Shown here one piece after another: positions 12,838 to 54,496 of a stretch of 64,000 nt of DNA (position 1 is the first letter of the stretch; each line of letters starts with the position of its first letter). The position numbers and the translations under genes are program-made. The notes under the pieces were generated by a model. That model made no database searches, was not told the DNA's origin, and saw nothing but the letters and a program-made list of their open reading frames with translations. The stretch is taken from sequence record MW735835.1, one strand, 5' to 3'.

Positions 12838-12852
12838 TACATTATCAACGTG
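12838..12852 (+). promoter_or_regulatory. Phage promoter motif upstream of chimallin
   Basis: TACATTAT caacg TG. Confidence 0.75.
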
Positions 12853-12924
12853 AATATCGGAGCCAAGCTTCAAGATGTTCACTAGGCCCTAGTAACATTC
12901 TTTTCCATCCCAAGGAGTAACACC

Positions 12925-14832
12925 ATGGCTGTAAACAACGACGAAACCCTCGACACCGGCGCCGGCAGCGAGCAACCCCGTCGCAACGAACCGCGCGGCG
13001 AACCGCGTGGTGAGCGTCGTGAGACCAACATGAACGCCGGTCTGCTGGACATCAACCGCCTCCTGGGCGCCCCGATGAGCCGCCGTATCTCCGGCGAAGT
13101 TCTGGTCAATGCCGTCAAGGCCATCAAGCACTGGTTCGCTCCCGAGCGTCAAGTAGCCGGCGGCGGTCTGATCGATCTGACCAAGATCCAGGTTCTGGGT
13201 CTGGAAGCCTCCGAGCACAACGTCTCGATCTCCAGCGCCATCCTGGCCTACCCGGTCGAAGAAAACGGCACCGTCAAGGTGCTGGTGCACTCCATCGCTC
13301 TGGCTCAGAGCCTGACCGACGACGTCGGTGTGCGTACCGCCGAGATCAACCACCGCAGCTACACCCTGCCGGTGATCCCCTCGGACTACATCACCGAGAG
13401 CTACCTGGCTCTGATCGACGAAATCGTCAAGAAGAACTTCGAGCAGTCCCGCAAGAACGTCGAAATCGTTCGTGCCGGCTGGCGTGTGGTTTCGCCGAAG
13501 GTCGACTTCAGCGAGCCGGAAAACACCGAAGTGCGTCAGGTCGTGTTCTTCGCGCAGGCTGCGCTGGCCGCCATCTACGGCGACCTGTACAACGAGAACC
13601 TGTACTTCTCGCTCGACTGGCTGACCAAGGCCTCCACCCTGGAGATCAACGTCGACCTGTCCGGCCGCGAAGTGTTCACCGCTGACGGCCTGCCGCGTCG
13701 TTCCGACCTGGCCGTGCAAGTCGCCGGTATCGTCCGCAAGGGCGACCAGAACATCCCGGTTCCGCTGGCCAACCTGGGCGGCTACGTCAACATCATGTAC
13801 ACCCCGCCGGCGCAAGAAGAGCGTTGGGCCCGCAACCAGCGCCGTGATCAGCCGTACTTCACTCCGGTGTACGTGATCAACCGCATGGACACCGGCACCA
13901 ACGGCATCACCCCGGAACTGCTCCTGCTGGCCATGGCCGGCGCCTCGGTCATCTCCAAGGACCAGGCCTGGGCGCAGGGCTTCCTGCCGGGCGACGTGCA
14001 GCGCGGTGAAGTGGACTACCGTGACGCCGGTCTGCTGAACATCCTCGGCCCGGATCAGGACAAGCAGCCTGTCGTGTTCGACAGCCGCTCGAGCCTGGAC
14101 ACCAACAAGTGGGCCCAGTACTTCTTCAGCCTGGTGGACGACAACCTGGCCTGGGCAATCGAGCTGGAAGAAGGCGGCGACAACAGCTGGATCACCAGCC
14201 TGCTGTCCGACGCTGCAACCGACGACAGCCCGAACAAGGACGCCATCCGCCGTCTGTACGACTACGCGGACCGTCTGACCAACGGCAACTTCACCCGTCG
14301 TGCCAAGGAGCTGGGCGTCGAAGTCCCGCTGCAAATGTCCGGTGCCCGTTACCTGACCGGTACCTGGATCGACGAGAACGGCAAGGAGCGCGACCTGCGC
14401 GACTGGGACCTGCTGCGCTGGATGGCTTCCAACCCGAGCGACGAGGGCGAATCCGCTCTGCGCTACCAGGACGTCATCGACCGCACTGACCTGGACGTGG
14501 AAATCCGCGTTTCCGAGCAGTTCGACCAACTGACCCAAGCCCTCGGCGCGAGCAACGTCAAGTTCGCCCGCTACGTGGACCTGGCCTTCATCAACCCGGC
14601 CTTCATCGAGGCCCTCGCCATGGCCGTTGCTGATTGCAAGATCAACATCGACCAGCGCTCTGCGCACTACACCTTCGGCAACCGTCGCCTGCGTGGTAAC
14701 ACCCGCATCCGCGACTTCGTCGGTGGTGACCTGACCCACGGCATGCTCTCGAGCCGCCGCATGGGCAACGACGGTCAGCGTGGTCTGCGTTCCGTAGTCG
14801 GCAACGGCTTCGGTTTCGGCAACACCTACTGA
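12925..14832 (+). CDS. chmA: Chimallin, major phage-nucleus shell protein
   Basis: 635 aa, extreme codon bias; segments GLPRRSDLAV, TPELLLLAM, AWAQGFLP, GTWIDENGKERDLRDWD, NPAFIEAL, RRLRGNT match recalled 201phi2-1 gp105 motifs; directly upstream of RNAP beta-prime gene. Confidence 0.9.
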   Translation: MAVNNDETLDTGAGSEQPRRNEPRGEPRGERRETNMNAGLLDINRLLGAPMSRRISGEVLVNAVKAIKHWFAPERQVAGGGLIDLTKIQVLGLEASEHNVSISSAILAYPVEENGTVKVLVHSIALAQSLTDDVGVRTAEINHRSYTLPVIPSDYITESYLALIDEIVKKNFEQSRKNVEIVRAGWRVVSPKVDFSEPENTEVRQVVFFAQAALAAIYGDLYNENLYFSLDWLTKASTLEINVDLSGREVFTADGLPRRSDLAVQVAGIVRKGDQNIPVPLANLGGYVNIMYTPPAQEERWARNQRRDQPYFTPVYVINRMDTGTNGITPELLLLAMAGASVISKDQAWAQGFLPGDVQRGEVDYRDAGLLNILGPDQDKQPVVFDSRSSLDTNKWAQYFFSLVDDNLAWAIELEEGGDNSWITSLLSDAATDDSPNKDAIRRLYDYADRLTNGNFTRRAKELGVEVPLQMSGARYLTGTWIDENGKERDLRDWDLLRWMASNPSDEGESALRYQDVIDRTDLDVEIRVSEQFDQLTQALGASNVKFARYVDLAFINPAFIEALAMAVADCKINIDQRSAHYTFGNRRLRGNTRIRDFVGGDLTHGMLSSRRMGNDGQRGLRSVVGNGFGFGNTY

Positions 14833-41225: not shown

Positions 41226-42830
41226 ATGAGCGACAATCAAAACGGCCAAGGTGGCATGGACGAGATCGATGGCGATCCGGCTGAGAACATGATCCAGGAC
41301 CCTGACGCGCCTCAAGGTGCTGATGCCTTTGCCGCTGCCGCGCAACAAGCCGCTGCTGCTGGTCCCGAGACTCCGGCTGAGAAACAGCCTGAGCCGAAAG
41401 TGGAAATCGAAGGTCTGTGGGATGAGGTCGACCAACCCAACCCGCACGTAACCCACAACGCCTCCATGTTCCATCGTCAGGCTCTGGCACCGACTCAGGT
41501 CGGCCTGGCAGCCCTGCACGTGGGCATGCGTGAGCTGGACATGATCATGGAAGCCCGTGGTCTGAACAACCTCACCGAAGAGAAGGCCAAGTCCCTCTCG
41601 AACGCTGACCGTCGCATGGTCAACCTAGCTCGTAACCTGACCACCATCTACCAAGACATCTACTTCGACGATGTCGACAAGGCCGGCAACTGGCACGCCA
41701 CGGTCATGCACAACGAGACCGCCCTCGGCGCTGGTAAGGTGAAAGCCGCCAACATCAAGGACCCGGTACTCGCCATTCGTGCGACCTTCGGCCAGGGTTC
41801 TCAGGTTCAGATCCCGCTGTGGTCCACTGGCCTGTGGGTGACCTTCCGTGCGCCGACCATCCAGGAACTGCTGGACTTCGAACAGAAGTGCCGCCTGGAG
41901 AAGATGAACCTCGGTCGTTCTTCCAACGGCATGGTCTTCTCGGCCGTCGAGGTGTACACCGTCGAGACTTACATGCGCTTCGCTCTGGAGCACGTGATCT
42001 CGGTGAACTACGCCTTCGAGACCGCTGACCACGTCGAAGAACTGCTGACCGTGATCCGTTCGCGCGATTACCAGCAGGTCGTGTGGGGCATGGTCTGTGC
42101 CATGTATCCGGATGGCTACCCGCTGCGTCAGCCGTGCGTGGCCAACCCCGATACCTGCGACCACCTGGACGAGGTTCTGCTGAACTTCGCCCGCATGGGC
42201 TTCGTGGACCGCGACAAGATCAGCGACAAGCAAGCGTTGATGATGGCCTCGCGTTCCACCAAGCGTGATCGCAAGTGGCTGGAAGAATACCAGGCCGAGT
42301 TCCCGTTCTTCGAGAAGCGCATCAACGTCGGCAATGGCCTGACTGCGGTACTGCGTTGCTCCTCGCTGGCCGAACAGATCGATGCAGGCCACCTGTGGGT
42401 GGACGGTATCTCCAAGGCAACCAACGAAGCCTTCGGTGCCCGTCTGTCCGAGATGGACCGCATCCGTCACATCATGCGTTCGGGCGCATTGACCAACCTG
42501 CGTCAGTACGGCCACTGGGTCGCCCAGTTCGAACACAAGACCGACCCGGAAGCTGCGCCGATCATTCACGCCGACTTCGAGAACAAGGACCGCATCCTCG
42601 AGTTGCTGTCTGAAGACCCGCAAGTCAGCGAGATGCTGACCAACGAGATCGTCGAGTGGATCAAGAAGTCGACCGTGTCCTACACTGCGCTGGCCAAGAC
42701 ACCGTGCCCGGCCTGCCAGAAGGAACCGGAAGACAAGACTCATCCGCACCTCATCCCGATCGACATCGGTTACGTTTTTTTCACCCTAGCCGCACTGAAG
42801 ATCAGCCAAGTAGAAGGCGCGGCGGTGTAA
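41226..42830 (+). CDS. T4 gp26-like baseplate/tail assembly chaperone
   Basis: IPLWSTGLWVTFRAPTIQELL resembles gp26 LPSxGxxVxFRP; Cys motifs PCVANPDTC and PCPAC. Confidence 0.6.
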   Translation: MSDNQNGQGGMDEIDGDPAENMIQDPDAPQGADAFAAAAQQAAAAGPETPAEKQPEPKVEIEGLWDEVDQPNPHVTHNASMFHRQALAPTQVGLAALHVGMRELDMIMEARGLNNLTEEKAKSLSNADRRMVNLARNLTTIYQDIYFDDVDKAGNWHATVMHNETALGAGKVKAANIKDPVLAIRATFGQGSQVQIPLWSTGLWVTFRAPTIQELLDFEQKCRLEKMNLGRSSNGMVFSAVEVYTVETYMRFALEHVISVNYAFETADHVEELLTVIRSRDYQQVVWGMVCAMYPDGYPLRQPCVANPDTCDHLDEVLLNFARMGFVDRDKISDKQALMMASRSTKRDRKWLEEYQAEFPFFEKRINVGNGLTAVLRCSSLAEQIDAGHLWVDGISKATNEAFGARLSEMDRIRHIMRSGALTNLRQYGHWVAQFEHKTDPEAAPIIHADFENKDRILELLSEDPQVSEMLTNEIVEWIKKSTVSYTALAKTPCPACQKEPEDKTHPHLIPIDIGYVFFTLAALKISQVEGAAV

Positions 42831-43285
42831 CCCTAGCAATAGGAGAACACGTCGGAGACCGAAGCTTCGGCTTAAAGCAGATCGGCAATCGTGATGAGCC
42901 TTCGCACCTGGACAGAATCTTGGGTACCTACGACAAGACGCTGGACAGTATCCAAGCGGAGATCATCACGAGGGAGTGTTACGACGAGTACTTCGGCATT
43001 TACGCTCAGAGTACCCAAGGAGCTTCTCCTTGGGCTTTGGCCGCGATGCATGAGCCGGAAGACCTAGGTAAGGTGGACCCGTTCGATGTGTACCTTGAGC
43101 GATACTTGGTCGCCAACGTGCTGAAGTACACGGGAATCAACTTTCAAGATTTCATGAAGTTGCCCCGTGATCGAGCGGAAGCCATGTTGAAAAGGTGTGA
43201 CTCGTTGTCCTCGAAAGAAGACAGTGATGTGGCCAACCTCGTCAACGGGCGGAACGCCAAGCAACCGACGATGAAACCGAAATAA
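42782..43285 (+). CDS. Downstream chaperone-like ORF (gp51/gpT-like), probably reached by -1 frameshift or a non-canonical start
   Basis: Open -1 frame from 42656 to 43285; protein-like body with INFQDFMKLP; no convincing RBS-linked start. Confidence 0.55.
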   Translation, partial: HPSRTEDQPSRRRGGVTLAIGEHVGDRSFGLKQIGNRDEPSHLDRILGTYDKTLDSIQAEIITRECYDEYFGIYAQSTQGASPWALAAMHEPEDLGKVDPFDVYLERYLVANVLKYTGINFQDFMKLPRDRAEAMLKRCDSLSSKEDSDVANLVNGRNAKQPTMKPK

Positions 43286-43329
43286 GGAGGAGGGGTTCGC
43301 CCCTCCTCTATTCCATCTCACAGTGACGA

Positions 43330-43344
43330 TACATTATCCAACTG
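43330..43344 (+). promoter_or_regulatory. Phage promoter motif at start of accessory island
   Basis: TACATTAT ccaac TG. Confidence 0.75.
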
Positions 43345-43364
43345 TCTATCCATCGGAGTTCATC

Positions 43365-43871
43365 ATGTCTGATAAACGCAGTGGTATCGAGAAACTGACC
43401 AACCCGGAAGCACTTTTGCAGGGCTATTGGCAATCAGTGGTCCACCAGTACCGGGAAACCGATTACATTATCGTGGACGAGGACATCCGCGATATCGTCG
43501 CCAAGATCAACGAAGTTTCCGGGGTCTTGGTGACCGACTGCTGCGCCTCCCATCCGGAGCGTGAGCGTCATAACCTCTACCTGGCCTTCCTCCCAACCAC
43601 CGAAGGCTTTGATTTCCTCGCCGACCTGTATAACCACTTCGTGGGCCAGGTGTTGAACGAGGCAGTCATTGGTAATCTGGTCTCGCAGATCCAATTCCGT
43701 GTTCGTCATCGACAAGTCGATGTGAAATTCCAGGAGTGGGGCACCATTTGGAGCATCCGTCTCCCGGTGGACGATCAGAACGTGAAAGATCGTGCACTCA
43801 CCTGCCTCAGGAGGGCTGTTGACAATGCCATTGGAGATCTTAGACGAGAACCTGTGGGCGATCCAAGCTGA
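43365..43871 (+). CDS. Hypothetical protein with TDCCASHP motif
   Basis: GGAG RBS; KINEVSGVLVTDCCASHP resembles the LNxxxGxxTxxSCxGH phage domain. Confidence 0.7.
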   Translation: MSDKRSGIEKLTNPEALLQGYWQSVVHQYRETDYIIVDEDIRDIVAKINEVSGVLVTDCCASHPERERHNLYLAFLPTTEGFDFLADLYNHFVGQVLNEAVIGNLVSQIQFRVRHRQVDVKFQEWGTIWSIRLPVDDQNVKDRALTCLRRAVDNAIGDLRREPVGDPS

Positions 43872-44286
43872 CACCCGCGTCATCACTGTCAACATGGTGG
43901 GTGCCATGGGTGCAGGAGTCGCCAGAACGGCCAGGAATACCATCCCTGGGCTGTACAAGCACTACCGCAAGATGATCACCCAGATCGAACCCACCCAGTT
44001 CATCACTTACCAACATGACGGCATCCGTTATTTGCTGATTCCCACGAAGCTGGATTGGCGAGACCCTTCGCCACGTGGGTTGGTGGTGCACAATTTCTGT
44101 AAACTGGTGGTCTTAGCCAACCGCCACCGCTTAGGCACCATCGTACTGCCGCCCATGGGGTGTGGGAACGGCCAGTTGGACTGGGAGAATGACATCCAGT
44201 ACCTCTACAAGTCGTTGTTGCCGTATCAAGAGACCAAGTTCATCGCCGCGTTAGGCGACATGAGGAGCAGGAATGGAAGGTCCTAA
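43825..44286 (+). CDS. Macrodomain ADP-ribosylhydrolase, DarG/OARD1-like
   Basis: VNMVGAMGAGVA, LIPTKLDWRDPS, LPPMGCGNGQLDW; AGGAGG RBS. Confidence 0.85.
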   Translation: MPLEILDENLWAIQADTRVITVNMVGAMGAGVARTARNTIPGLYKHYRKMITQIEPTQFITYQHDGIRYLLIPTKLDWRDPSPRGLVVHNFCKLVVLANRHRLGTIVLPPMGCGNGQLDWENDIQYLYKSLLPYQETKFIAALGDMRSRNGRS

Positions 44287-45166
44287 TTACTTCCGCGATG
44301 CGTTCGGGTATTTCAAGCGAAAGACAGTGATCCCTGGGACCGATGGACTCGCCAATGCGATGCAGTCGGCCATCAAGGCTCACAAGTTCGTGTTGCCGGA
44401 AGGTGGGCGGGTGCTGGATAACGACTTGCGGGCTCTGCCTGACATCGTTCGTTTGCCGTACCCTACGTTGGTGCTCGAATATGCCTGCGAAGAAGACGTC
44501 CTCAGACCAATTGCTCAAGAGGCTGTTGACAAGGGCAGTGATGACGCCGAGATCCAGTTCATGCTCAAGGGCGGTTTCCGTCGAGACAAGCTGATCGTCA
44601 TCGCCATGCAGAAAGATGACAAGGACATCGACGTCTTTATCATCTTCCATTCCCCATTGCAGAACAACTGGGCTAGCCCGCCGTTCGAATGCACCATTCC
44701 GTCGAAAAAAGAAGAAGTGATGAACTTCCTTGATTCGGCTATCATCCCTGTTCGGGTTGAAAGTGACCATGGGATGTCGCAGGAATGGTTCCAGAAGATC
44801 GTCTGGGCCACCATGCAAGGACCTGTGCGTGCTATTTACGAGGTCGTTGAGGCGCTCTCGTTCAGTAACATCACGGAGATGGACATCCCTGCGAAGAAGA
44901 TGACCTTCACCGAAAGCCGGAAGAAGGCCTTGCCCTACGACAGCTACAAAGTGCTCGTGGTGGACAAGACTCAGAAGATCGTTGGTGCAGGGCGAAGCGA
45001 ACAACGAGCACCGGTGCAGCCTGGCGAGCGTCGTCAGAGCCGTGAGCACACCCGTCGAGGTCATGACCGTACCTATAAACGGTCCGGCAAGAAGATCTGG
45101 ATCAATCCCATGGTGATCAACGCCGGAGTGGGCGGAACGATCATCAAAGACTACTCAGTGAAATAG
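44273..45166 (+). CDS. Hypothetical phage protein with C-terminal basic HxRRGHxR motif
   Basis: GAGGAG RBS; REHTRRGHDRTYKRSGKKIWINP. Confidence 0.8.
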   Translation: MEGPNYFRDAFGYFKRKTVIPGTDGLANAMQSAIKAHKFVLPEGGRVLDNDLRALPDIVRLPYPTLVLEYACEEDVLRPIAQEAVDKGSDDAEIQFMLKGGFRRDKLIVIAMQKDDKDIDVFIIFHSPLQNNWASPPFECTIPSKKEEVMNFLDSAIIPVRVESDHGMSQEWFQKIVWATMQGPVRAIYEVVEALSFSNITEMDIPAKKMTFTESRKKALPYDSYKVLVVDKTQKIVGAGRSEQRAPVQPGERRQSREHTRRGHDRTYKRSGKKIWINPMVINAGVGGTIIKDYSVK

Positions 45167-45177
45167 GAGCGTCACCT

Positions 45178-45651
45178 GTGAAAGAGAAGAAACAAGTCCG
45201 TCTGGTCAACATCAGCAAAGCCCGCGTACAGAAGATCGATCCGAAGCTGCCATTGGTGTCCATCACCGACCGTTACAGCAACGGCGTCTCCATTCCGTAC
45301 AAGGATCAGCGCCCCTTGTTGCAACTGGAGTTCTTCCCGCGCGACCATGCGCCGGAGATCGCAGTCGAGCACTGCATGACCATCGAGCGCGCAGATCAGC
45401 TGATCAAGTTCGTCGAAGAGCAGCGTGAGGCCGGTGCTGAGGTGATCTACATCCACTGCACCGAAGGTCGTGTGCGCTCCTATTCGGTCTGTGCTGCACT
45501 GGAAAGCCTGCCGGGCTTCTACCATGACCACTCCGATGCCTGCATCAAAACGGGTATCCTGGACCGCTACACCTACAACCTCCTGGGTGATCGTTGCGAC
45601 GCTTACGACGAAGCCCGCTCGGCTGGCGCCGAAGAGGAAGCAGCCTCGTAA
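45178..45651 (+). CDS. Protein-tyrosine/dual-specificity phosphatase-like enzyme
   Basis: P-loop IHCTEGRVRS (HCxxGxxRS); TAGGAG RBS + GTG. Confidence 0.8.
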   Translation: MKEKKQVRLVNISKARVQKIDPKLPLVSITDRYSNGVSIPYKDQRPLLQLEFFPRDHAPEIAVEHCMTIERADQLIKFVEEQREAGAEVIYIHCTEGRVRSYSVCAALESLPGFYHDHSDACIKTGILDRYTYNLLGDRCDAYDEARSAGAEEEAAS

Positions 45652-45661
45652 AAAAGTACCA

Positions 45662-45895
45662 CGAGGGGATAGTGTATGCGAAATACGTTGGCACGCCGTG
45701 ATGCCAGCGCCCCTTTCGGATCGCCAGTCACGCGTGATCACATCCTCGGCCTCTCACGGCGGCGCGAGGACTGGTCACCGGCTGGCGATCCCCATACAGG
45801 GGACCTGTAGAGGGCTCTCTAACCCGTTCTCGCCGCCCGTACCCGTCCGTGGCACAATGGCGTGACTACGAGGTCCCCGCCTATCCTCAACCTCG
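45662..45895. ncRNA. Candidate large structured ncRNA of unknown class
   Basis: Intergenic; closing stem 45662-72/45881-95, 10-bp stem 45718-27/45782-91, 8-bp stem 45799-806/45871-78, crossing pairing 45728-33/45860-65. Confidence 0.6.
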
Positions 45896-45909
45896 GTAAG
45901 GATCTACCG

Positions 45910-46701
45910 ATGAAACAAGTCTACCTCGGCGTCAAAATCATCGTGGGCCAGCCCATGACTCGTGGTGCTTACAACGAGTACCGCGGATGGCAAACCCCGG
46001 AGCGTGAAAACGCTGAAGACGAAGGCTATCTGGTGGAATACCCGGACAGCGCGCCGAACCACCCGGACCATGCCGGGTACATCAGCTGGTCACCCAAGTC
46101 GGTCTTCGATAACAGCCACATCGCCCTTGGCGACGTGTCGAACTTCCCGCCCTTCGCCGTCCGTCTGATCGGCGAGCGCAACCAGCTGGCCAGCAACCTG
46201 GGCAAGCTGAAGACCTTCCTGGAAGGTGACGTTACCCACCTCAGTGAGCGTAACCTCGATCTGCTGAACCGTCAGGTACAGGCACAAGAAGTCCTGCTGG
46301 ACATCCTGAACCAGCGCCTGGATTCGGTTGACCTGGGCGTGAGCGTGTCCACTTCGGTTCGCGTCGAGCTGGACCTGGCCAACAACAACGCCAAAGACCT
46401 GATGGGTCTGGCAATTGCTGCTGGTGCTGAAGGTCAAGGCCCCACCGACGTCATCGTGGCACTCGAAGATGCCAAGATCGTCGATGCCGAGGGCAACGAG
46501 ATCGCCGACTCCAGCGTCGAGATCGAGAACCTGGTGCGTGGTTTCTCCGTGAGCGGCAACATCGGCGAGAACCTCTACGGTGTTGCAGTCTGCCGTGAGC
46601 GTTGCGTAGCCAACGTGCACAGCTCCTTCGTTGAAGAAGGCACCAAGCTGTCCCTGCTGGTCAAGATCGGCAGCCACAACCGCGCGCCAGCTTTCGCGTA
46701 A
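45910..46701 (+). CDS. Three-domain phage protein (YxGxK/EGYLVxY/SWSP domain + crAss001_48-like helix pair + unknown C-terminal domain)
   Basis: TAAGGA RBS; YLGVKII..PMTRGAYNEYRGW..DEGYLVEY..YISWSPK; ERNQL..KLKTFL..LLNRQ..LDILNQR. Confidence 0.75.
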   Translation: MKQVYLGVKIIVGQPMTRGAYNEYRGWQTPERENAEDEGYLVEYPDSAPNHPDHAGYISWSPKSVFDNSHIALGDVSNFPPFAVRLIGERNQLASNLGKLKTFLEGDVTHLSERNLDLLNRQVQAQEVLLDILNQRLDSVDLGVSVSTSVRVELDLANNNAKDLMGLAIAAGAEGQGPTDVIVALEDAKIVDAEGNEIADSSVEIENLVRGFSVSGNIGENLYGVAVCRERCVANVHSSFVEEGTKLSLLVKIGSHNRAPAFA

Positions 46702-46761
46702 ATCGTTACGGCCTCCGTAGATAGATATGTGAAACCACTATTCATCTTACGGAGGCTTTCG

Positions 46762-46938
46762 ATGTATCGCGTCCTGTCACTCGAAAAGATTCGCCAGCAA
46801 CAAACCCCCGAGGAACTGGAGAACAATCGCCAGAAGACCTTGGAAGCATGCGCTCGTTTCAAAGAGGCTCAAGAATCCTTGGAGAAGCTCTGTGCAGAAC
46901 GAGGCATCGAAGTGCCCGTGATGATGTGCGCTGCCTGA
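46762..46938 (+). CDS. Small helical protein
   Basis: GGAGG RBS before ATG 46762. Confidence 0.6.
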   Translation: MYRVLSLEKIRQQQTPEELENNRQKTLEACARFKEAQESLEKLCAERGIEVPVMMCAA

Positions 46939-47340
46939 TGTCGGAGGCTCCCTAGACGTGGATGCGTTGCACGGCTTGCGTCCATTCATGTCAGGGGTGG
47001 TTCCCGGGGTACGGGGAGCCTCCACATTCTCAAGCCTGTACTCTGCCTATGGTATGTCGACCGAAGATTTCTTCCCTCGATGTGCTATGGCCCGAGACGA
47101 ACTGCGATTCAGGGGCGGTCCTGGCTTGAGAAAGGCTCCAGCTTCAACTGGAGTCGAGTCCCAACGAATTACGACAGCTCAAGGCGCTGCTGCGCTTGGA
47201 TTGGGAGATCCCGGTCGGCTGTCACCTGTTCGGAAAAGGCCCGGGTTAGCGGGCATCGGGCCAGCGGCAGCCTTTTGGCAGCGCGCGATAATGGCCGGCA
47301 GCCTACGTGGTAGCCATCCGCCGGCGCCCGGGCCTTTTCC
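46938..47340. ncRNA. Tandem structured RNA modules upstream of tRNAs
   Basis: Closing stems 46943-52/47014-23 (10 bp), 47027-36/47123-32 (10 bp), 47232-45/47327-40 (14 bp perfect) plus internal hairpins; no credible CDS. Confidence 0.6.
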
Positions 47341-47350
47341 ACCTAGTTGT

Positions 47351-47426
47351 TCCGCGATAGCTCAGTTGGTAGAGCAGCAGACTGTTAATCTGTTGGTCCC
47401 TGGTTCGAGTCCAGGTCGCGGAGCCA
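47351..47426 (+). tRNA. tRNA-Asn (GTT)
   Basis: TCCGCGA/TCGCGGA acceptor, AGCTCAGTTGGTAGAGC D-arm, CT-GTT-AA loop, GTTCGAGT T-loop, encoded CCA. Confidence 0.97.
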
Positions 47427-47435
47427 GCTTCACCC

Positions 47436-47512
47436 GGCTCCATAGTTCAGTTGGTTAGAATGCTAGCCTGTCACGCTAGAGGTCAGGGGTTCGAGTCCCC
47501 TTGGAGTCGCCA
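47436..47512 (+). tRNA. tRNA-Asp (GTC)
   Basis: GGCTCCA/TGGAGTC acceptor, CTAGC-CT-GTC-AC-GCTAG anticodon arm, GGGGTTCGAGTCCCC T-arm, encoded CCA. Confidence 0.97.
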
Positions 47513-47529
47513 TTTTCACGGATACGATC

Positions 47530-47763
47530 ATGCACGATAGAATCGTTGAACTCGCCAACGCCCATGACGTCACCACCGCTGCTTTCGAAGCGCTCCTGAG
47601 TCAGGAGTTCTTGGCAAGAGTGAGTGTGTTCCATCGTCAGGCGAAGCATGTCACCGAAGTCATCAATCGTTTGCTGGTCGTGGTCCAAGGTGAGGAAACT
47701 CACTACATTGAACTCATGATGATCTTGATTGCTCCTGATCCGAAGTGGGTTCTCGCTCAATGA
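47530..47763 (+). CDS. Small hypothetical protein inside tRNA cluster
   Basis: 77-aa helical ORF; its TGA stop is the first triplet of the tRNA-like element. Confidence 0.55.
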   Translation: MHDRIVELANAHDVTTAAFEALLSQEFLARVSVFHRQAKHVTEVINRLLVVVQGEETHYIELMMILIAPDPKWVLAQ

Positions 47764-47841
47764 GGACGTGGGGCCAGCCGGTACGGCAGTCGCTCTTGAT
47801 GCTTCTAGGAGTGGGTTCAATTCCCACCCGTCCTCAACCCA
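47761..47841 (+). ncRNA. tRNA-like element / degenerate tRNA (anticodon unresolved, TTG or CTT)
   Basis: 8-bp acceptor TGAGGACG/CGTCCTCA, D-arm GCC-AGCCGGTAC-GGC, T-arm GTGGG-TTCAATT-CCCAC; anticodon stem mismatched. Confidence 0.6.
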
Positions 47842-48186
47842 TTCAAAGTTTCTGTTGTGCGGCGGCCGCTGTGCAACGGGATGCCGAGAGATAACTCTAG
47901 AAGGTCCAGAATCCGCCGTGGGAGGCAGACTTCCGACCTCTGGGGGCGATTGCAGTCGTCGTTCTCTTGGTTACAGTGCTAGGGACCATCCCGCCCGATA
48001 CGGTGCAAGGCTGCGACGAATTCCACAAACACGACTCCCTAGAGTGCACGCTAGAGGAGCAGCCGTACCTGAGGTCCATCCAGGTGGCGGTGTTGTAGTG
48101 TCACCCTGATGGACTGCTGTACGTTCTGGACTGGTTCCAGCCGCGGCACGTGACTACGGTAGAATAGCAACCGGTTCCGCCTCTGG

Positions 48187-48227
48187 CTGCCCGCTTGACC
48201 CTCGTTGGCGAGCGGGCAGTTATGCCG
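48187..48227 (+). terminator. Stem-loop closing the RNA cluster, followed by TTATGCCG
   Basis: CTGCCCGCT/AGCGGGCAG 9-bp stem. Confidence 0.65.
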
Positions 48228-48270
48228 TTTCAACTACTTGGAACTGACTATAACAAGGACATCGGCCAAC

Positions 48271-48648
48271 ATGCACTACTTCCTGTTCTACCCAGCTCTC
48301 AACGCCTCATTCAACGACAGCACGGAACTGCTCGCTAAGTTCATGTGCCTGGGGGAGAATATCGTCGTGGCGATGGAGAAGGGTATTGAGAAGACTAAGC
48401 GAGTGGAGGAGGACGAACTCGAAGCACCACTGCTGCACCTTGTGACTGGCTTCAATGTCCGGCGCATTGAGCAGAAGTTCAACGCCATTGTAGAGAAAGT
48501 GATTGCTCGTTTCGGACAAGGATTGGAGCCCTCTCAGCCGAGCGAGAAAGGTAAACTGTCGATGATCGCCCTCCTGCTTGTACAGGACCGCTGGGACATC
48601 ATCGAGCAAGTAATAGACACTACGCCTTTGGCAATGCTGAGGCCGTAA
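48271..48648 (+). CDS. Hypothetical protein
   Basis: AAGGA upstream of ATG 48271 in ORF 48205..48648. Confidence 0.65.
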   Translation: MHYFLFYPALNASFNDSTELLAKFMCLGENIVVAMEKGIEKTKRVEEDELEAPLLHLVTGFNVRRIEQKFNAIVEKVIARFGQGLEPSQPSEKGKLSMIALLLVQDRWDIIEQVIDTTPLAMLRP

Positions 48649-48705
48649 CCATTTCATGAGGGGCGGCTGTCCGCCCTTTATGCCGTCACCCAAGGAGACT
48701 CATCT

Positions 48706-49143
48706 ATGCTGTCCAATCGTGAACTGTCCAAAGCCGTGCGTTGTGAAGTGCTCGGTAAAGTCAACCGCCGCATCAACTCGCTGTGTCGCATCCACAAACC
48801 GCTGCTGTCCAAGTTGGGACGTTGCTATTACGTCGTCTCGCTGAGTAACATCAAGCGGATCAAGATCCGCGTCATGTCGGCAGAGGCGCCGCTCGACCCG
48901 ACCAAACGCTGCCTGCTGGTGAACAGAGACCTCTACTCCCAGAATGCCTACTACGGTTGGGTCAAATACGACGACGGCAAGTGCCGGTTCGAGCGTCAGA
49001 AGAAAGTCAAAGAAGGGGTGACCTACGCCGATGGTCAGATCCTCTTCGAGATGACTTTGACGGGCATGGACGATCACTTCAGTCAAGAAGACGTCCGCCA
49101 GGCGTTCAAATACTACCGGGCGAAGAAGGAGTCGAAGAAATGA
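48706..49143 (+). CDS. Hypothetical basic protein
   Basis: AAGGAG RBS; 145 aa. Confidence 0.75.
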   Translation: MLSNRELSKAVRCEVLGKVNRRINSLCRIHKPLLSKLGRCYYVVSLSNIKRIKIRVMSAEAPLDPTKRCLLVNRDLYSQNAYYGWVKYDDGKCRFERQKKVKEGVTYADGQILFEMTLTGMDDHFSQEDVRQAFKYYRAKKESKK

Positions 49144-49616
49144 AGAGCCCTTTCTTTTACCTAGGCAAGCTCACTGGGTATATCCATGGCTGGTTCACGG
49201 GCTGGATGGAGGGTCGGCGTGTTGCTGCCCTGTGGCGTCAATACGGGGCACTGGAGGCCATCCCCACTCGTCTCCTGCGTAACACCGGTCCATCGGCACC
49301 GATGATGGTGCGGCGCCAACAGGTGAAGATCGCCACGTTCCATCTGCTCAACGCCCTGGACATGACCAATGGCCCGCAGATCCCCAACACAATCGCGATG
49401 GTGGAAGCCTGGCTGAGCTTCAACTCTCAAGGCGAAGACATCATCACCATGGAGAACATCTCACGTTCAAACGGGATCGTCCACTCGCTGATTGACCTCG
49501 CTGTCCGTAAAGACGGTCTGGACAAGACCCAGTTACAAGAAGCCTTCAAGGCCATGAACAAGGTGTGGGTCTGGGAGCAGTACCGTACCAACAGATTCTT
49601 GTCCGTGGGCGATTGA
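49140..49616 (+). CDS. Hypothetical protein
   Basis: AAGGAG upstream; ATGA coupling at 49140. Confidence 0.7.
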   Translation: MKSPFFYLGKLTGYIHGWFTGWMEGRRVAALWRQYGALEAIPTRLLRNTGPSAPMMVRRQQVKIATFHLLNALDMTNGPQIPNTIAMVEAWLSFNSQGEDIITMENISRSNGIVHSLIDLAVRKDGLDKTQLQEAFKAMNKVWVWEQYRTNRFLSVGD

Positions 49617-49678
49617 CATAAACGGGAGGGGTGCACCCCTCCCTTTCTTTTTGTTTTGATTCGAATTATTTTCGACAA

Positions 49679-49693
49679 TACATGATAGCGGTG
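49679..49693 (+). promoter_or_regulatory. Phage promoter motif variant
   Basis: TACATGAT agcgg TG after a terminator. Confidence 0.65.
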
Positions 49694-49720
49694 AATATCC
49701 CCACCAATGTCTAAGGAGAC

Positions 49721-49978
49721 ATGATGAACCGTATCGAAAACGATGTAATGGGTACTCACGTCCTGCTCAACCTGGTCAAAGAGATCATGGACTGTGCCAT
49801 CAACATGAAGGACGAAACCACAGCCGAACGTATCCAGATGGTCCGCATCTGGTTCAACCGCGCCAAGCCGTCCGTTCAGCAGGATGTTGAAATGTTCCTG
49901 CGCCACATCCTGGCTGGGGAAGAAGAACACCAGACTCGTCTGGTTCGTTCTGCTATCGACATCATCATCACGAAATAA
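49721..49978 (+). CDS. Small hypothetical protein
   Basis: AAGGAG RBS; 85 aa. Confidence 0.75.
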   Translation: MMNRIENDVMGTHVLLNLVKEIMDCAINMKDETTAERIQMVRIWFNRAKPSVQQDVEMFLRHILAGEEEHQTRLVRSAIDIIITK

Positions 49979-49987
49979 GGGATCGCC

Positions 49988-50710
49988 ATGCACAACCTGA
50001 ATGAGTTCACTGAAGACCAGTACGGCAACTTCATCATCGAGCACGATGGTGTAGAGGTCAACTACGGTCGTCTGCGCCTGATCGGGACCGAGTCGGGCAT
50101 GATGTTTGTGACCGATCTTCGTAACTACGGCGACATGGTCGAGATCTTCATGGAGGATTCGCTCTCCATGGAGAAATTCGATGGGCGGGCTAACTTCCAC
50201 CTTACCATCGAGATCGGTGAGCGAGGGGAAAGCAACTTTGTACGTTTGTGGCCGGTGCTCAATGAGGATGTCGATCGCCTCTGTCGAGTACTGACCGTGG
50301 AAACAGGTAACATCGTCGAGGTGTCGCACGAAGGCCATGTCTTGGCGGTTTATGACCGCCATGAGCTGAAGGAACAGTCTCACAACCTGGACTACTTCGA
50401 CAGCGAAGTCGCTCCCGATGCCGTCGAGGCCACTTCCTGGCCTCGACTGGAAATGGACTTCGACCTCGCGGCGAAGATCCTCAGTGAGTCCATCCGCGAC
50501 GAACTGCGTGATCATGCATTCGGCGATAAGGAAATCTACTGGCGAGATCAACACGGCCACCAAGTTGCCACGGGTTACTACGGTTCCTCTGGCGTCGAAG
50601 TGGGGATGTGCGGGTTCGACATCAACTTCTCTGAAGAAGAAGCTCGTCAGCTGGTTGGGCTGGGGACTCTGGGTGAAGTCCAGCGAAACGACTCCCAGGG
50701 GGACGAGTAA
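49988..50710 (+). CDS. Hypothetical acidic protein
   Basis: TAAGGGA RBS; 240 aa. Confidence 0.75.
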   Translation: MHNLNEFTEDQYGNFIIEHDGVEVNYGRLRLIGTESGMMFVTDLRNYGDMVEIFMEDSLSMEKFDGRANFHLTIEIGERGESNFVRLWPVLNEDVDRLCRVLTVETGNIVEVSHEGHVLAVYDRHELKEQSHNLDYFDSEVAPDAVEATSWPRLEMDFDLAAKILSESIRDELRDHAFGDKEIYWRDQHGHQVATGYYGSSGVEVGMCGFDINFSEEEARQLVGLGTLGEVQRNDSQGDE

Positions 50711-50833
50711 GAAATAACCAGGTCTGCTAGATGTATGATAGCAGGCCTGGTCTTGCAATAAATCGTATGAGGGTGTAAACTCTCTGCCACACAAACAAGA
50801 AACCACCACTAACCAGACGCCAAGGAGTGTCTA

Positions 50834-51163
50834 ATGAACGAAGCGCTTGGAAAGCGTGATTTGAAACGGATTCTTTCCGTTCGTTTGGATCAACTGGTGC
50901 ACGTCCCGAAGTTCTTTGACGATACTGGTTTTTCCACCCTGGGCCATTGCCTCCACGTGGAGGTAGATCGTGAAGACGGGTTGATCAAGTACGACCTGTA
51001 CGGTAACGTGGTAGCCCAAGCTCGTATCACCACTGGCGGCGTCGGTGACATTGAAGTCGTCGACAAGAAAGTGTGGGACGAGGATGAGTTGGGATTGGAT
51101 ACCCTGATCGAGTGCACGTGCGATTGCATGGGTATCTCTCCCAGGGAGATGTACAACATCTGA
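50834..51163 (+). CDS. Hypothetical protein
   Basis: AAGGAG RBS; 109 aa. Confidence 0.75.
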   Translation: MNEALGKRDLKRILSVRLDQLVHVPKFFDDTGFSTLGHCLHVEVDREDGLIKYDLYGNVVAQARITTGGVGDIEVVDKKVWDEDELGLDTLIECTCDCMGISPREMYNI

Positions 51164-51227
51164 TCCGAAAAGAGAGGGGCTTCGGCCCCTCTTCTTTTGC
51201 CGTTTGACCATAACCAGGAGAAAGCCA

Positions 51228-51644
51228 ATGCGGAACCTCACCGCCAAGCTGTTGGTCTCAGCCCTCAAGGTACTGCATGCCGAAGAGACGTTCTTAGACA
51301 CGTGCGATTGGGAAACCTTACCCGATTACCGGATCGTCCGCATCACCCATGATGGGGAATGGAACAGCATCATCACCTTCGGCAGTAATAAGAACAAACT
51401 GACTGGCACAGTCAGAGTCAACTACAATGTACTCCGTCGTCATCTGATGGATCTCAGTTACAGCATCATCGAGACGGCTGGTGCTTCTTTCCAGACCTTC
51501 TCCAAAGCGGGTTATCCCGGGTTCTTCTTCAAGATCATGGAAAAGAAGAACCGCAAAGGAGAAACCACATTGCAGCGCCTAGAACGTGAAGCCGCAGAAG
51601 TTCAGGCCAAGCACGAACGCATGATCGCTGACAAGAAGAAATAA
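51228..51644 (+). CDS. Hypothetical protein
   Basis: CAGGAG RBS before ATG 51228. Confidence 0.7.
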   Translation: MRNLTAKLLVSALKVLHAEETFLDTCDWETLPDYRIVRITHDGEWNSIITFGSNKNKLTGTVRVNYNVLRRHLMDLSYSIIETAGASFQTFSKAGYPGFFFKIMEKKNRKGETTLQRLEREAAEVQAKHERMIADKKK

Positions 51645-51693
51645 ACGGATAGGGGACTTCGGTCCCCTCCCCCGTCAAGCCGACGAACGGTAA

Positions 51694-51721
51694 TTGACAC
51701 GTAGCTGGGTTATGCTACAAT
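51694..51721 (+). promoter_or_regulatory. Sigma70-type promoter
   Basis: TTGACA (51694-99), 16-nt spacer, TGn-TACAAT (51713-21). Confidence 0.6.
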
Positions 51722-51747
51722 TCAACTAAGGCCACATGGAGGGCAAC

Positions 51748-52014
51748 ATGAATGCAATAAATAACAAGAAAGGTACGAGAATGAAGAAAGTTGTAAACTG
51801 GTTCACCAATCGCTTGGACAAATGGTTCAAGTTCAAAACTGTCAAGCTGTTCAATTTCGAGGCTGAAGACATGAAGGTAGTAGGCTACGGGCTGATCACT
51901 CTGGCATTCGCAATCGTCATCAACGCGGGTGTCAACGCTTACGCGATACATGAAGGTAAGACTATCCATCAAACCTTTGAAGTCAACATCATCAAGAAGG
52001 AGGAGGCTAAATAA
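51748..52014 (+). CDS. Small AT-rich single-pass membrane protein
   Basis: GGAGGG RBS; hydrophobic VVGYGLITLAFAIVINAGVNAYAI after a Lys-rich N-terminus. Confidence 0.7.
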   Translation: MNAINNKKGTRMKKVVNWFTNRLDKWFKFKTVKLFNFEAEDMKVVGYGLITLAFAIVINAGVNAYAIHEGKTIHQTFEVNIIKKEEAK

Positions 52015-52117
52015 GAGCGGCACGAAAATAAACCCAGGCCAAGACGGCCCGGGCTTTATTTTTTGTTTTGAAGGAATCCTATGCGTTAATTTTTCTTTTG
52101 TCCGCTAGGGATTCATT

Positions 52118-52723
52118 ATGAGATCTTTACTTATGGCGGGAGCCATGGTCAAGTCCGACATCAGAGGCAGTGTACTGTTCCAGACCAGTGGAACATTCAA
52201 ATGGAAATGTCCTGAAGGAGTCACCAAGGTATCGATAGCCCTTGTAGGTAGCGGTGGCTCTGGTTATTGGGAGAACCGTCAGATTGGTGCTGGCGGTAAC
52301 GTGCGGTTCGTCAACGACGTTCCCGTTGTTCCAGGTACAGAATACAACATCACCATCCCCAGTCAACGTGCAGCGAAGAACCTCAACGCCGATAACAGCA
52401 CCAGCGCTCTTGGCTATACGGCTAACTCTACGTTGTCCGCCACTGTACTGGGTGGTAACGGTCAACAACCACTCCAATCTCTTGGTAGCTCGATGCGAGC
52501 AGGCGGCGCGGTAGGTTATGTTGCCAGTGGTACCACTGGTCAAGGTATCAATCTCCTGACCTTCACTGCAACCGCCCCTTCCAGCGGTGGACGTTACGAT
52601 GGCCAAACCGCCGGCGGTGGTGGTGGCTACAATGGATCGAGTGCAGGTCTTGGTGCCGTGGGTGCCGTCCGCATTCTTTGGGGTAAAGGTAGAGCCTTCC
52701 CTTCCACCGATATTGTGGACTGA
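52118..52723 (+). CDS. Glycine-rich virion/tail-fibre-like domain protein
   Basis: TSGTFKWKCPEGVTKVSIALVGSGGSG...GAGG..VVPGTEYNITI...GAVRILWGKGRAFP glycine-rich phage domain. Confidence 0.7.
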   Translation: MRSLLMAGAMVKSDIRGSVLFQTSGTFKWKCPEGVTKVSIALVGSGGSGYWENRQIGAGGNVRFVNDVPVVPGTEYNITIPSQRAAKNLNADNSTSALGYTANSTLSATVLGGNGQQPLQSLGSSMRAGGAVGYVASGTTGQGINLLTFTATAPSSGGRYDGQTAGGGGGYNGSSAGLGAVGAVRILWGKGRAFPSTDIVD

Positions 52724-52724
52724 C

Positions 52725-52758
52725 AGCATAGAGCCCGGCATCTGCCGGGCTCTATGCT
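52725..52758. terminator. Bidirectional terminator
   Basis: AGCATAGAGCCCGGC/GCCGGGCTCTATGCT 15-bp stem between convergent genes. Confidence 0.85.
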
Positions 52759-52759
52759 C

Positions 52760-54496
52760 TTATGCTGCTTCCAGCGCCAGCTCTTTCTCGAACTCTGCCA
52801 GCAATTCCCACGGATCGGGAGCCTTCATCGTCTCGGTCATGATCTCGATCGAGTTCACAGGACCACCTGTAAGGTTGATCCCCACCAGACGTTGCTTGCT
52901 CGCCGTCACCCCGGCAATCCGACAGACCTCGTACATCGTCGTCATCTTCGACAGGTTGAGAATGATCTCACCGTTCGGATACGTCGAACCGATGTCAGCG
53001 TCAGACGTGTACCGCCGCACGTAACTGCGTACCGAGGGCAGGTCCTTGATCATGAACACGCCGTTGGCCTCTACGAGGCTAGTTGGCAAGGTCACAATCC
53101 AGTCATCTTTACCCAGAAGCAGTTTGTCCAGCTCATCTTCCATCCGGTCCGACAACGTACCCGCCACCATCCCATCTTTGAGCATGTCAAAGTAGAAGTC
53201 GTTGACGTTACGCTTCGGGTTCGAGTTGAAGATGCTGTACTCGGACGATCCCGACAGAATGCCAATCTGAGTGTTGAGGTCAGTGACTTTCTTGTCCAGC
53301 AGTTCCACACCCAAGCAGTCGTAGACGTTATACACCACGTAGTTGACTTTGTAGTGCTTCTGCATCTGCATGTGCCATTCGACACTACCAGACGCTGCGG
53401 TGGAGTCACCTGTCGGGAAGTAGAGCTTGCCCCAATCCTCGCCCAGGTTTTTCTTCAGAATTGCATCCAACGCATAGCTGGGTTCTTTACCCTTGGCCCG
53501 ACGGATGTTCCGGTAGACGGCTGCCGAGTCGATCCAGATGTGGCTGGAGGGTGTCTCCACCACGTGCCAACGATCGTACCATGCCAGGTTCTCTGACTTA
53601 CCATCGGCCTTGACCTTGGTTTCAGGACCCCGCTTATAACGGAAGTACTTGAACGGTTCCGGCACTTCCGGCGCACTGAACACCTCAGCCAGGTTGTAGC
53701 CTTCCATCTCCAGCGCACGGAGCATCACCGTGATGTCGAAGTCCATGTTCCAGAAGGACACGAAGTCTGGCTGCCATTCGTGACACTTGTCGATGCATTC
53801 CTTGACCATGGCCCCAGGGGACTTCATGATCTTGATCTCGAACTCGATCCCACGCGGCCTGGTGATGTGACCCAAGTGCTGGTCCAACGCTGCCTTAATG
53901 GTGTTGATCGGATCAGGGATACCGGCAATCCAGGTGTCCAGAATGGTCACGATGGCCTTGTTGTTGAAGGTCACCGTCGAGATGATGATGTCCTTACCCC
54001 CGTTCTCGTTCCACATGTCGGTCTCGGTGTCGAGTACCGCCACCTGGTTCGAGCGGAACAGTCCAGGCCATTTCTCCTGGTACTGACGTTTGATGAGGGT
54101 CGAAGGACTGATGTCGGCACCGTAGATGTATTGGTTCCGGCATAGGGTCTTTAACTGCTGCTTGGGGTTCCCGTAACCCAGACGGCGCACGATCTGTTGG
54201 TTCAGATCCCGCTGAGTGGTCTCACACTGGATAAGCTTATCCATGTACTCCACTTCTTTTTTGTCTTTGTGGTTGCGGTACTTCTCCTTGGTGATCCAGA
54301 AGGGTCGCTTACGGTTCGGATAGAAACGAAGTCGGGTCTGGTGAGTGCCATCCTTCAGATGGACGATCTCTTTGACCGTCAGCAGGTCATCGGTATCGTT
54401 CGCTGCTGATTCGGTATAAATGGCGTGTTTGCACTCGAGCCCAATGATGTCTTCTGGTTTGAAGACAGGTGCTTTCTTAACGACGGTCATTGGCAC
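52760..54496 (-). CDS. Family-B DNA polymerase exonuclease/N-terminal subunit (phiKZ gp82-like)
   Basis: ExoI VLDTET, ExoII FWNMDFD, ExoIII YNVYD, polymerase motif A DADIGSTYPN. Confidence 0.85.
   Translation of the reverse strand: MPMTVVKKAPVFKPEDIIGLECKHAIYTESAANDTDDLLTVKEIVHLKDGTHQTRLRFYPNRKRPFWITKEKYRNHKDKKEVEYMDKLIQCETTQRDLNQQIVRRLGYGNPKQQLKTLCRNQYIYGADISPSTLIKRQYQEKWPGLFRSNQVAVLDTETDMWNENGGKDIIISTVTFNNKAIVTILDTWIAGIPDPINTIKAALDQHLGHITRPRGIEFEIKIMKSPGAMVKECIDKCHEWQPDFVSFWNMDFDITVMLRALEMEGYNLAEVFSAPEVPEPFKYFRYKRGPETKVKADGKSENLAWYDRWHVVETPSSHIWIDSAAVYRNIRRAKGKEPSYALDAILKKNLGEDWGKLYFPTGDSTAASGSVEWHMQMQKHYKVNYVVYNVYDCLGVELLDKKVTDLNTQIGILSGSSEYSIFNSNPKRNVNDFYFDMLKDGMVAGTLSDRMEDELDKLLLGKDDWIVTLPTSLVEANGVFMIKDLPSVRSYVRRYTSDADIGSTYPNGEIILNLSKMTTMYEVCRIAGVTASKQRLVGINLTGGPVNSIEIMTETMKAPDPWELLAEFEKELALEAA

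Follow-up and report, generated by a model that had tools for sequence, protein, structure and literature searches.

What is the purpose of the block of small genes that lies between PA10_00171/172 and the DNA polymerase gene of Pseudomonas phage pPa_SNUABM_DT01 (DT01), and is it one purpose? The stretch of DNA analysed here (the window) is 64 kb of the sequence record MW735835 of this phage, and a window coordinate equals the record coordinate minus 124000. The record, 265.5 kb in length, is 100% identical to the window, as checked over the stretch from 43000 to 53000. Small plus-strand genes fill 43365-52723, up to the DNA polymerase gene on the minus strand, and nearly all of PA10_00173 to PA10_00190 (genes 173 to 190 below) are annotated as hypothetical. 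A sequence-only reading of the window had described this plus-strand block, which is present in the record, and had taken it to be a single early operon for counter-defence in the cytoplasm. I found that the order of four of its genes, 174 to 177, is conserved, that a counter-defence function of these four is well supported by homology, and that the block consists of at least two transcription units, not one.

It is very probable that DT01 is a nucleus-forming jumbo phage (Chimalliviridae), as the sequence-only reading had assumed, because it encodes homologues of chimallin and PhuZ. The chimallin (ChmA) homologue, at 12925-14832, matches phiKZ gp54 with an E value of 2.3e-21 over residues 70-609, and the PhuZ homologue, at 428-1420, is taken from the annotation note of the record only. 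Both virion and non-virion multisubunit RNA polymerases were reported in the phage's own paper (PMC8541153). Chimalliviruses have been examined for their way of evading DNA-targeting immunity, namely a protein nucleus in which they hide, and recent work shows that the shell is not enough. The locus described here brings together four candidate inhibitors in a compact and conserved form, and the P. aeruginosa phage that carries it is in culture. The relatives with which it was compared are five IMG/VR loci and six contigs out of other assemblies. In public reads, near-identical phage DNA was found in estuary, soil, and other metagenomes of nine studies.

Four genes in a fixed order

It was found that the order of the macrodomain gene, the AcrVA2-like gene, the phosphatase-like gene, and the Sequestin gene is the same in eight relatives (L002, L003, L005, L025, L028, L029, L030, and L031). 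The identity of their products to those of genes 174 to 177 is 30-67%, and the 14-nucleotide (nt) overlap between genes 174 and 175 is present in all eight. In a distant relative, L023, the macrodomain, AcrVA2-like, and phosphatase-like genes still co-occur, with insertions between them. Published anti-defence families cover three of the four conserved proteins, namely the AdfM/DarG2-like, the AcrVA2/FinQ-like, and the Sequestin families. The counter-defence unit of the sequence-only reading is thus retained for genes 174 to 177, with their three anti-defence families and fixed order, but not as a single operon.

The explanation that I consider probable is as follows. The stretch 43329-49643 would be one early-promoter-driven unit (unit 1), and its 5′ half would be a four-gene anti-defence cassette. 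Gene 174 would remove DarT2-made ADP-ribose from the phage DNA, and the phage nucleus is the probable site of this step. Gene 175, whose translation is coupled to that of gene 174, would recognise a nascent host protein and cause the loss of its mRNA, while gene 176 would act as a cysteine phosphatase and the Sequestin part of gene 177 would soak up the Thoeris signal 3′ cyclic ADP-ribose (3′cADPR). The 3′ half of unit 1 would contribute a tRNA-Asn, a tRNA-Asp, a decayed tRNA-Gln, and two conserved structured RNAs. The stretch 49678-52723 would be a separate second unit of small genes. The recurrence of the promoter motif, the homologies, the kept gene order, the covariation of the RNAs, and the terminators are results of this analysis. 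In this scheme I infer the timing, the biochemical activities, and the localisation, and the functions rest on homology.

Is the block instead a plastic accessory region without a common purpose, in which genes, tRNAs, and RNAs have been collected between core genes? The promoters would then be shared only because the genome is compact and read in one direction. Several traits agree with this: gene 173 occurs in some relatives only, the tRNA sets differ, and genes 178, 181, 185, 188, and 190 have no homologue in the relatives. Foreign-looking neighbours exist too, such as a NUMOD4-type homing-endonuclease-like gene in the tRNA region of L025 (11610-12143) and a Kelch-repeat gene on the minus strand in that of L028 (13141-14076). 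The G+C content at third codon positions is 0.68 in the block versus 0.77 in core genes, and most genes past gene 177 lack a family match. Such a history is hard to reconcile with genes 174 to 177, whose order and overlap have been kept at the low identities given above, three of which are still held together in L023, and three of which map to anti-defence families. As an account of the block, a purposeless collection seems unlikely.

Gene 174, a DarG2-like macrodomain

The macrodomain claimed by the sequence-only reading is present. Gene 174 matches the Pfam Macro model with 22.8 bits (cut-off 22) and the NCBIfam model antitoxin_DarG with an E value of 1.6e-21, the latter in its macro part only. 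Three PDB sequences were matched and no others: 5m3i (E 1e-14), 5m31 (E 6e-13), and 7omu. Their listed names are generic (RNase III inhibitor, Appr-1-p processing domain protein, and Macro domain-containing protein), and I take them to be DarG/DarTG macrodomain entries. On this assumption, the best solved relatives of gene 174 are DarG macrodomains, and like DarG it keeps the aligned P-T-K segment.

The gene 174 product is 33% identical to phiKZ gp104 (E 3e-21), and it is the sole gp104 match in the DT01 genome. The phiKZ protein, named AdfM, is imported into the phage nucleus, where it strips DarT2-made ADP-ribose off the phage DNA (PMC13309987). Judged by homology, gene 174 is an AdfM homologue that would counter DarTG2. 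Like AdfM (Morgan et al., Cell Rep 2026), it is a stand-alone macrodomain of about 155 amino acid residues from a Pseudomonas jumbo phage that encodes chimallin. Unlike AdfM of phiKZ, it stands behind an early-type promoter and overlaps with an AcrVA2-like gene, which phiKZ lacks according to a profile search. The sequence-only reading had reasoned that the proteins of the block protect the cytoplasmic layer, which the nucleus leaves exposed. This rationale suits a signal sponge and an AcrVA2-type protein, but it does not fit gene 174, because AdfM is imported into the nucleus and cleans DNA there.

Gene 175, an AcrVA2/FinQ-like protein

The H-T-R-R-G-H motif noticed in gene 175 is present, and 14 homologues share its residues H259, R261, and H264 without exception. 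Their HxRxxH spacing equals that of H286, R288, and H291 of AcrVA2, whose mutation abolishes the AcrVA2-driven loss of Cas12a mRNA (bioRxiv 10.1101/2022.11.29.518452). In the ESM Atlas, gene 175 reached a feature score of 0.97 and a structural template-modelling (TM) score of 0.69 to clusters of PF26125, and weak precomputed matches to PF26125 were found on two of its orthologues (52-53% identity). An AlphaFold model of gene 175 has a predicted local distance difference test (pLDDT) score of 71.5. When this model was compared with 48,161 chains, the AcrVA2 chain 7ci1_A was first, with a Z score of 6.1 and the next chain at 3.6; 168 residues were aligned with a root-mean-square deviation of 4.6. 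A Foldseek search of the model against the PDB gave a designed protein and proteasome subunits only. In a HMMER search of the PDB sequences with a profile of the gene 175 homologues, no AcrVA2 match was obtained, only a chance-level match of 47 residues.

These results suggest that gene 175 is a distant member of the AcrVA2/FinQ family. As in AcrVA2/FinQ proteins (Marino et al.; PDB 7ci1; PF26125), the length is about 300 residues and the HxRxxH motif lies about 35-40 residues from the C-terminus; unlike in AcrVA2, the N-terminal, target-binding part is divergent. AcrVA2 homologues have been described on megaphages and in Cas12a-less hosts (bioRxiv 10.1101/2022.11.29.518452). A tblastn search of 50,697 records of isolated phages matched gene 175 in DT01 alone. 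The host genus is not known to have Cas12a, and for this reason the target of gene 175 must be other than Cas12a. If so, gene 175 would offer a route to a new target of the nascent-peptide/mRNA mechanism.

Gene 176, a phosphatase-like protein

The sequence-only reading had noted a phosphatase signature, and the CX5R loop is indeed kept in gene 176. C94-x5-R100, S101, and the general-acid aspartate D56 are invariant in 8 orthologues. Sequence searches of the PDB gave weak matches to dual-specificity phosphatases and PTPMT1, while a profile search reached an E value of 0.65 only.

Gene 177, a Sequestin fusion

Gene 177 encodes three parts, and its middle part matches PF21825 (Sequestin) with 46.7-51.3 bits against a cut-off of 24.8. 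The structure model of the protein has a pLDDT score of 77. Three residues, R85 and E89 (R85-x3-E89) and Q122, do not vary, and R136 is conserved in most cases; by approximate placement, they may lie near the ligand-contact positions (R, E, Q, and R) of SequestinA. The Sequestin family binds 3′cADPR and cancels type I Thoeris (bioRxiv 10.1101/2025.07.12.664507). A working fusion of Acb4 and Sequestin is known in the Pseudomonas aeruginosa phage Ab09 (bioRxiv 10.64898/2026.06.04.730250). As in Ab09 gp59, a partner domain of about 80 residues precedes the Sequestin part of gene 177 on the N-terminal side. Unlike in Ab09 gp59, this partner is not Acb4, and an extra beta domain of 125 residues comes after Sequestin. 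Acb4 was tried as an identity of the N-domain and ruled out, as PF13876 gave no match and the domain did not align with Ab09 gp59. No Sequestin was found in phiKZ.

What is the N-domain? No model of the Pfam copy searched matches it. It is 47% identical to residues 10-84 of gp49 of phage N4, in which residues 83-159 are Tad2-like. The N-domain (45910-46140) is present in 127 isolated phage records, and elsewhere it stands alone, is fused to Tad2 (N4 gp49; L036 1174-1653), or is fused to Sequestin, the last in N4-like phages of Klebsiella, Pseudomonas, and Stenotrophomonas. With Tad2 as its fusion partner in one phage and Sequestin in another, the N-domain is plausibly a further signal-binding domain. 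Sequestin itself was revealed through a fusion, and the same reasoning makes the N-domain a candidate for a new domain of this kind. In searches of the PDB, the whole gene 177 model was swamped by helical-hairpin matches, and only a viral structure library gave useful rows; in this library, the C-terminal beta domain showed likeness to small proteins of phiKZ-like phages.

Several points weigh against the explanation set out above. The Pfam DSPc match of gene 176 (18.5 bits, E 0.0019) is under the cut-off of 33.5. The link of gene 175 to AcrVA2 is distant, with no sequence match in HMMER and a middling Z score. Sequestin is part of a 263-residue fusion in gene 177, not a short stand-alone protein. 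AdfM is expressed late in phiKZ (PMC13309987), and given this, the early-type promoter before gene 174 is unexplained. A one-purpose island spanning the whole block is unproven, as genes 178, 181 to 184, and those of the second unit have no assignable function. Finally, two wastewater runs labelled as RNA-Seq gave a few low-depth fragments of 100% identity, including 47015-47312. They indicate presence, not expression, because they are contigs and flagged as probably DNA.

Promoters and terminators

Which genes are transcribed together? The promoter motif that the sequence-only reading placed at 43330 is real, conserved, and recurrent; its core ATACATTAT (P1) starts at 43329. Five exact copies are present in the window (377, 12837, 21999, 26910, and 43329), all intergenic and on the plus strand, where about 0.5 copy is expected by chance. 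With up to one mismatch, about 25 copies exist in the genome on the plus strand, upstream of genes and preceded by a T-rich stretch. Among the units headed by the five exact copies are PhuZ, chimallin with a non-virion polymerase subunit, the hypothetical gene PA10_00156, and two polymerase subunits. The motif is invariant and at the same position in eight relatives. In published descriptions, early promoters of jumbo phages have an AT-rich motif that spans about 10 nt and is preceded by a T-rich stretch (PMC7598289; PMC8244752), and the P1 motif fits this description of early virion-polymerase promoters in its AT-rich core, its upstream T-rich stretch, and its repetition before operons. By its letters and context, the P1-type motif is probably an early virion RNA polymerase promoter, with the timing deduced from this resemblance. 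Unit 1 would probably be read early by the virion RNA polymerase, because its promoter class is shared with the chimallin, PhuZ, and polymerase genes.

The end of unit 1 is marked by a strong intrinsic terminator (T1) directly after gene 184, and a second early-type promoter (P2) follows it. Two other promoters of the genome, at 251859 and 255584 of the record, have a context nearly letter-identical to that of P2. P2 is kept after the gene 184 homologue in four relatives (L002, L003, L005, and L025), and those 20-kb loci of relatives that reach that far have the P1 and P2 pair and no other copy of the promoter. The block thus comprises at least two transcription units. The coordinates of all features are collected in Table 1.

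The sequence-only reading had instead assumed one terminator-free early operon from 43330 to 52723, whose products act in the cytoplasm and whose tRNA-like elements serve as decoys. Its promoter exists, and a terminator scan of 43329-49620 gave no strong intergenic hairpin followed by a T-run, so the lack of a terminator holds for the items that it listed up to the tRNAs. The sponge and the AcrVA2-type protein would act in the cytoplasm, and the tRNAs of the clade (the GUN set described below, plus Gln) are conceivable targets of anticodon nucleases. It is beyond T1 that the idea fails: a single run to 52723 is ruled out by T1 at 49624, the conserved P2 at 49678, and three later terminators. 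Moreover, AdfM works on DNA within the nucleus, and the tRNA-like element aligns with a working tRNA-Gln and has the mismatches of decay. Taken as a whole, the cytoplasmic single operon is most improbable, and the division into an early unit with the four-gene cassette and a separate second unit is preferred.

Table 1. Coordinates of the features in and around the block (window positions).
Feature	Position	Strand	Remarks
G+C hairpin	43287..43308	+	Ends the upstream unit (genes 170-172), directly before P1; kept in relatives
P1, early-type promoter core ATACATTAT	43329..43337	+	Recognised by recurrence and conservation
Gene 173, 168 aa (amino acids)	43365..43871	+	T-D-C-C-A-S-H motif; variable slot
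Gene 174, 153 aa, stand-alone DarG2-like macrodomain	43825..44286	+	Homologue of phiKZ gp104 (AdfM)
Gene 175, 297 aa, AcrVA2/FinQ-like	44273..45166	+	C-terminal H259-x-R261-x-x-H264; 14-nt overlap with gene 174
Gene 176, 157 aa, Cys-based (CX5R) phosphatase-like	45178..45651	+	H-C-T-E-G-R-V-R-S motif
Structured RNA 1	45665..45887	+	Between genes 176 and 177; z -4.5
5-bp hairpin	45894..45909	+	Shine-Dalgarno sequence of gene 177 in loop; abuts ATG; stems invariant in 8/8 sequences
Gene 177, 263 aa, three parts	45910..46701	+	N-domain 1-77; Sequestin 80-138; C-terminal beta domain
Gene 178, 58 aa	46762..46938	+	Good ribosome-binding site
412-nt noncoding hairpin stack	46939..47350	+	Before the tRNAs; z -6.0 versus shuffles
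tRNA-Asn (GUU)	47351..47426	+	ARAGORN and Rfam RF00005, 72.3 bits
tRNA-Asp (GUC)	47436..47512	+	ARAGORN and Rfam RF00005, 69.5 bits
Decayed tRNA-Gln(UUG)-like element	47762..47836	+	Acceptor stem and T arm intact; 2 mismatches in anticodon stem; position 33 = C
Structured RNA 2	48035..48222	+	Upstream of gene 182; ends in long hairpin, then UUAUGCCG
Genes 182, 183, 184, small proteins	48271..49616	+	Conserved in relatives
T1, strong intrinsic terminator	49624..49643	+	8-bp G+C stem, then T-rich run; immediately 3′ of gene 184
P2, second early-type promoter ATACATGAT	49678..49686	+	T-rich upstream element
Unit 2, genes 185-190, small proteins	49724..52723	+	Separate unit behind P2
Further terminators (hairpin and T-run)	51173-51192, 52030-52056, 52726-52757	+	After genes 187, 189, and 190

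tRNAs and gene 173

Two of the claimed tRNAs, tRNA-Asn and tRNA-Asp, were called by two programs, while the third tRNA-like element (47762-47836) was called by neither ARAGORN nor the Rfam tRNA model RF00005. This element aligns over its full length with the working tRNA-Gln(UUG) of relatives, the anticodon loop included, and it looks like a decaying tRNA-Gln gene. It may have retained a role as a decoy. In phiKZ-type phages, matches to tRNA-Asn and tRNA-Asp lie within about 150 bp of each other at 88% identity, and both tRNAs are annotated in phiKZ. In the relatives L002 to L005, the tRNA arrays are at about 12500-13600 of the loci, and relatives carry Tyr, Asp, Gln, and Asn tRNAs plus His or Ser. 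In the clade, the array comprises Tyr(GUA), Asp(GUC), Asn(GUU), and His(GUG) as well as Gln(UUG); a Ser tRNA occurs once. The tRNAs with a GUN anticodon (the queuosine family) are those for Tyr, Asp, Asn, and His, of which DT01 keeps Asn and Asp only. In L002, a 112-nt match to the tRNA model (13414-13525, 48 bits) without an ARAGORN call may be a tRNA with a long insert.

Per 1000 codons, the core genes of DT01 use AAC 43 times, GAC 50 times, and TAC 30 times. The use of these three codons is higher in DT01 than in its GC-rich host. An ordinary explanation thus exists for the tRNAs in the high use of Asn, Asp, and Tyr codons.

Gene 173 has the T-D-C-C-A-S-H motif that the sequence-only reading had pointed out. 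In the ESM Atlas, its structure resembles a TYW3 cluster with a TM score of 0.61, and its matches to the TYW3/Taw3 profiles are below the cut-off (Pfam TYW3 E 0.21; NCBIfam Taw3 E 0.09). A profile search gave no PDB sequence match. Homologues were found in only three of nine relatives.

Could unit 1 be a housekeeping module for nucleotides, ADP-ribose, and RNA? The macrodomain and the phosphatase would then process ADP-ribose derivatives, for example ADP-ribose 1′′-phosphate from RNA repair or splicing, and a TYW3-like tRNA enzyme would act with the phage tRNAs in support of the translation of Asn-, Asp-, and Tyr-rich proteins. The codon use given above, the presence of tRNAs in unit 1, and the weak TYW3/Taw3 signals of gene 173 are in line with such a module, as is the best PHROG match of gene 174, PHROG 335, which is labelled 'phosphatase'. 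On the other hand, gene 173 is absent from most relatives, and the Sequestin and AcrVA2-like genes have no such reading. Gene 174 matches DarG specifically, not the general MacroD/Appr1p enzymes, and its phiKZ homologue is an experimentally shown anti-DarT factor (PMC13309987). A housekeeping role is therefore highly unlikely, and the anti-defence cassette is the reading that I keep.

Structured RNAs

The structured noncoding stretches seen by the sequence-only reading are real by their folding z-scores and covariation. For RNA 1, 37 consensus pairs were obtained from 8 sequences, and 12 of these pairs have changes on both sides; the controls had 4.9 +/- 1.6 such pairs in shuffles (0 of 500) and at most 4 when slid. 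For RNA 2, there were 57 consensus pairs from 6 sequences, 16 with changes on both sides, compared with 6.9 +/- 1.6 in shuffles (0 of 500) and at most 2 when slid. In DT01, RNA 1 is enlarged by a further hairpin of about 85 nt. L030 has no RNA 1, and the gap at that place is only 33 nt. For RNAs 1 and 2 and the 412-nt region, no relevant Rfam match was found at E values up to 10 in DT01 and up to 1 in L002. RNAs 1 and 2 thus represent two new RNA families without an Rfam match, for which alignments are ready. The three noncoding stretches have no internal repeats and no other copies in the genome, and the 412-nt stretch has no counterpart in the 277-kb relatives.

In a near-identical soil relative, 290 unrelated letters take the place of 46874-47168, that is, the end of gene 178 and the first two thirds of the 412-nt stack. 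The last hairpin module and tRNA-Asn are kept in this relative. Another observation concerns the 9-mer TTATGCCGT, which occurs twice after a G+C hairpin, at 48220-48228 (after RNA 2) and at 48675-48683 (after gene 182). In relatives, hardly any variation is seen in the first copy. The 9-mer could be a processing site or an internal start of the TATG type.

Do the RNAs take part in counter-defence? RNA 1 could be a switch that senses a ligand or a protein and sets the level of the gene 177 sponge; alternatively, the RNAs could serve as decoys or sponges against host immunity that senses or cuts RNA. That RNAs 1 and 2, and perhaps the 412-nt stack and the tRNA-Gln relic, are active counter-defence parts and not spacers is a doubtful proposition. 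If it were true, a chimallivirus would pair protein and RNA inhibitors in one early transcript. The tRNA region of phage T4 encodes the small stable RNAs C and D. As an analogy only, the DT01 locus is similar in that structured RNAs are encoded among phage tRNA genes.

Comparison with other anti-defence loci

The cassette resembles the 'anti-signalling hot spot' of N4-like phages and the anti-CRISPR loci in that several inhibitors of different immune systems, here predicted ones, are grouped in one variable region flanked by core genes. Unlike those clusters, it is found in a chimallivirus, behind a promoter of the virion-polymerase type. It also differs in its predicted combination of a nuclear, DNA-repairing enzyme with cytoplasmic inhibitors, and in having tRNAs and two covarying RNAs in the same unit.

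Neighbouring genes

The sequence-only reading had placed a chaperone locus upstream of the block, which was not borne out. The gene at 41226-42830 of the window gave no Pfam match and no chaperone family match in Pfam or PHROG; its matches are PHROG 4585 and PHROG 8054, both families without an assigned function. The label of this gene in the record is baseplate-hub assembly protein. On the 3′ side of gene 177, most genes gave no family match in the Pfam, PHROG, and NCBIfam searches. Gene 178 has no homologue in any of the relatives.

Upstream of gene 189, a hairpin is directly followed by a near-consensus sigma-70-like promoter (51694-51721; TTGACA, 16 nt, TG-n-TACAAT, 11 of 12 matches). Such a promoter is unexpected in a phage believed not to rely on the host polymerase, and it may have arisen by chance. 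For gene 190 (52133-52723), no homologue was found in the 277-kb relatives. Its product contains the glycine-rich domain PF21722 (29.7 bits) and has weak matches to minor-tail and tail-fibre PHROG families.

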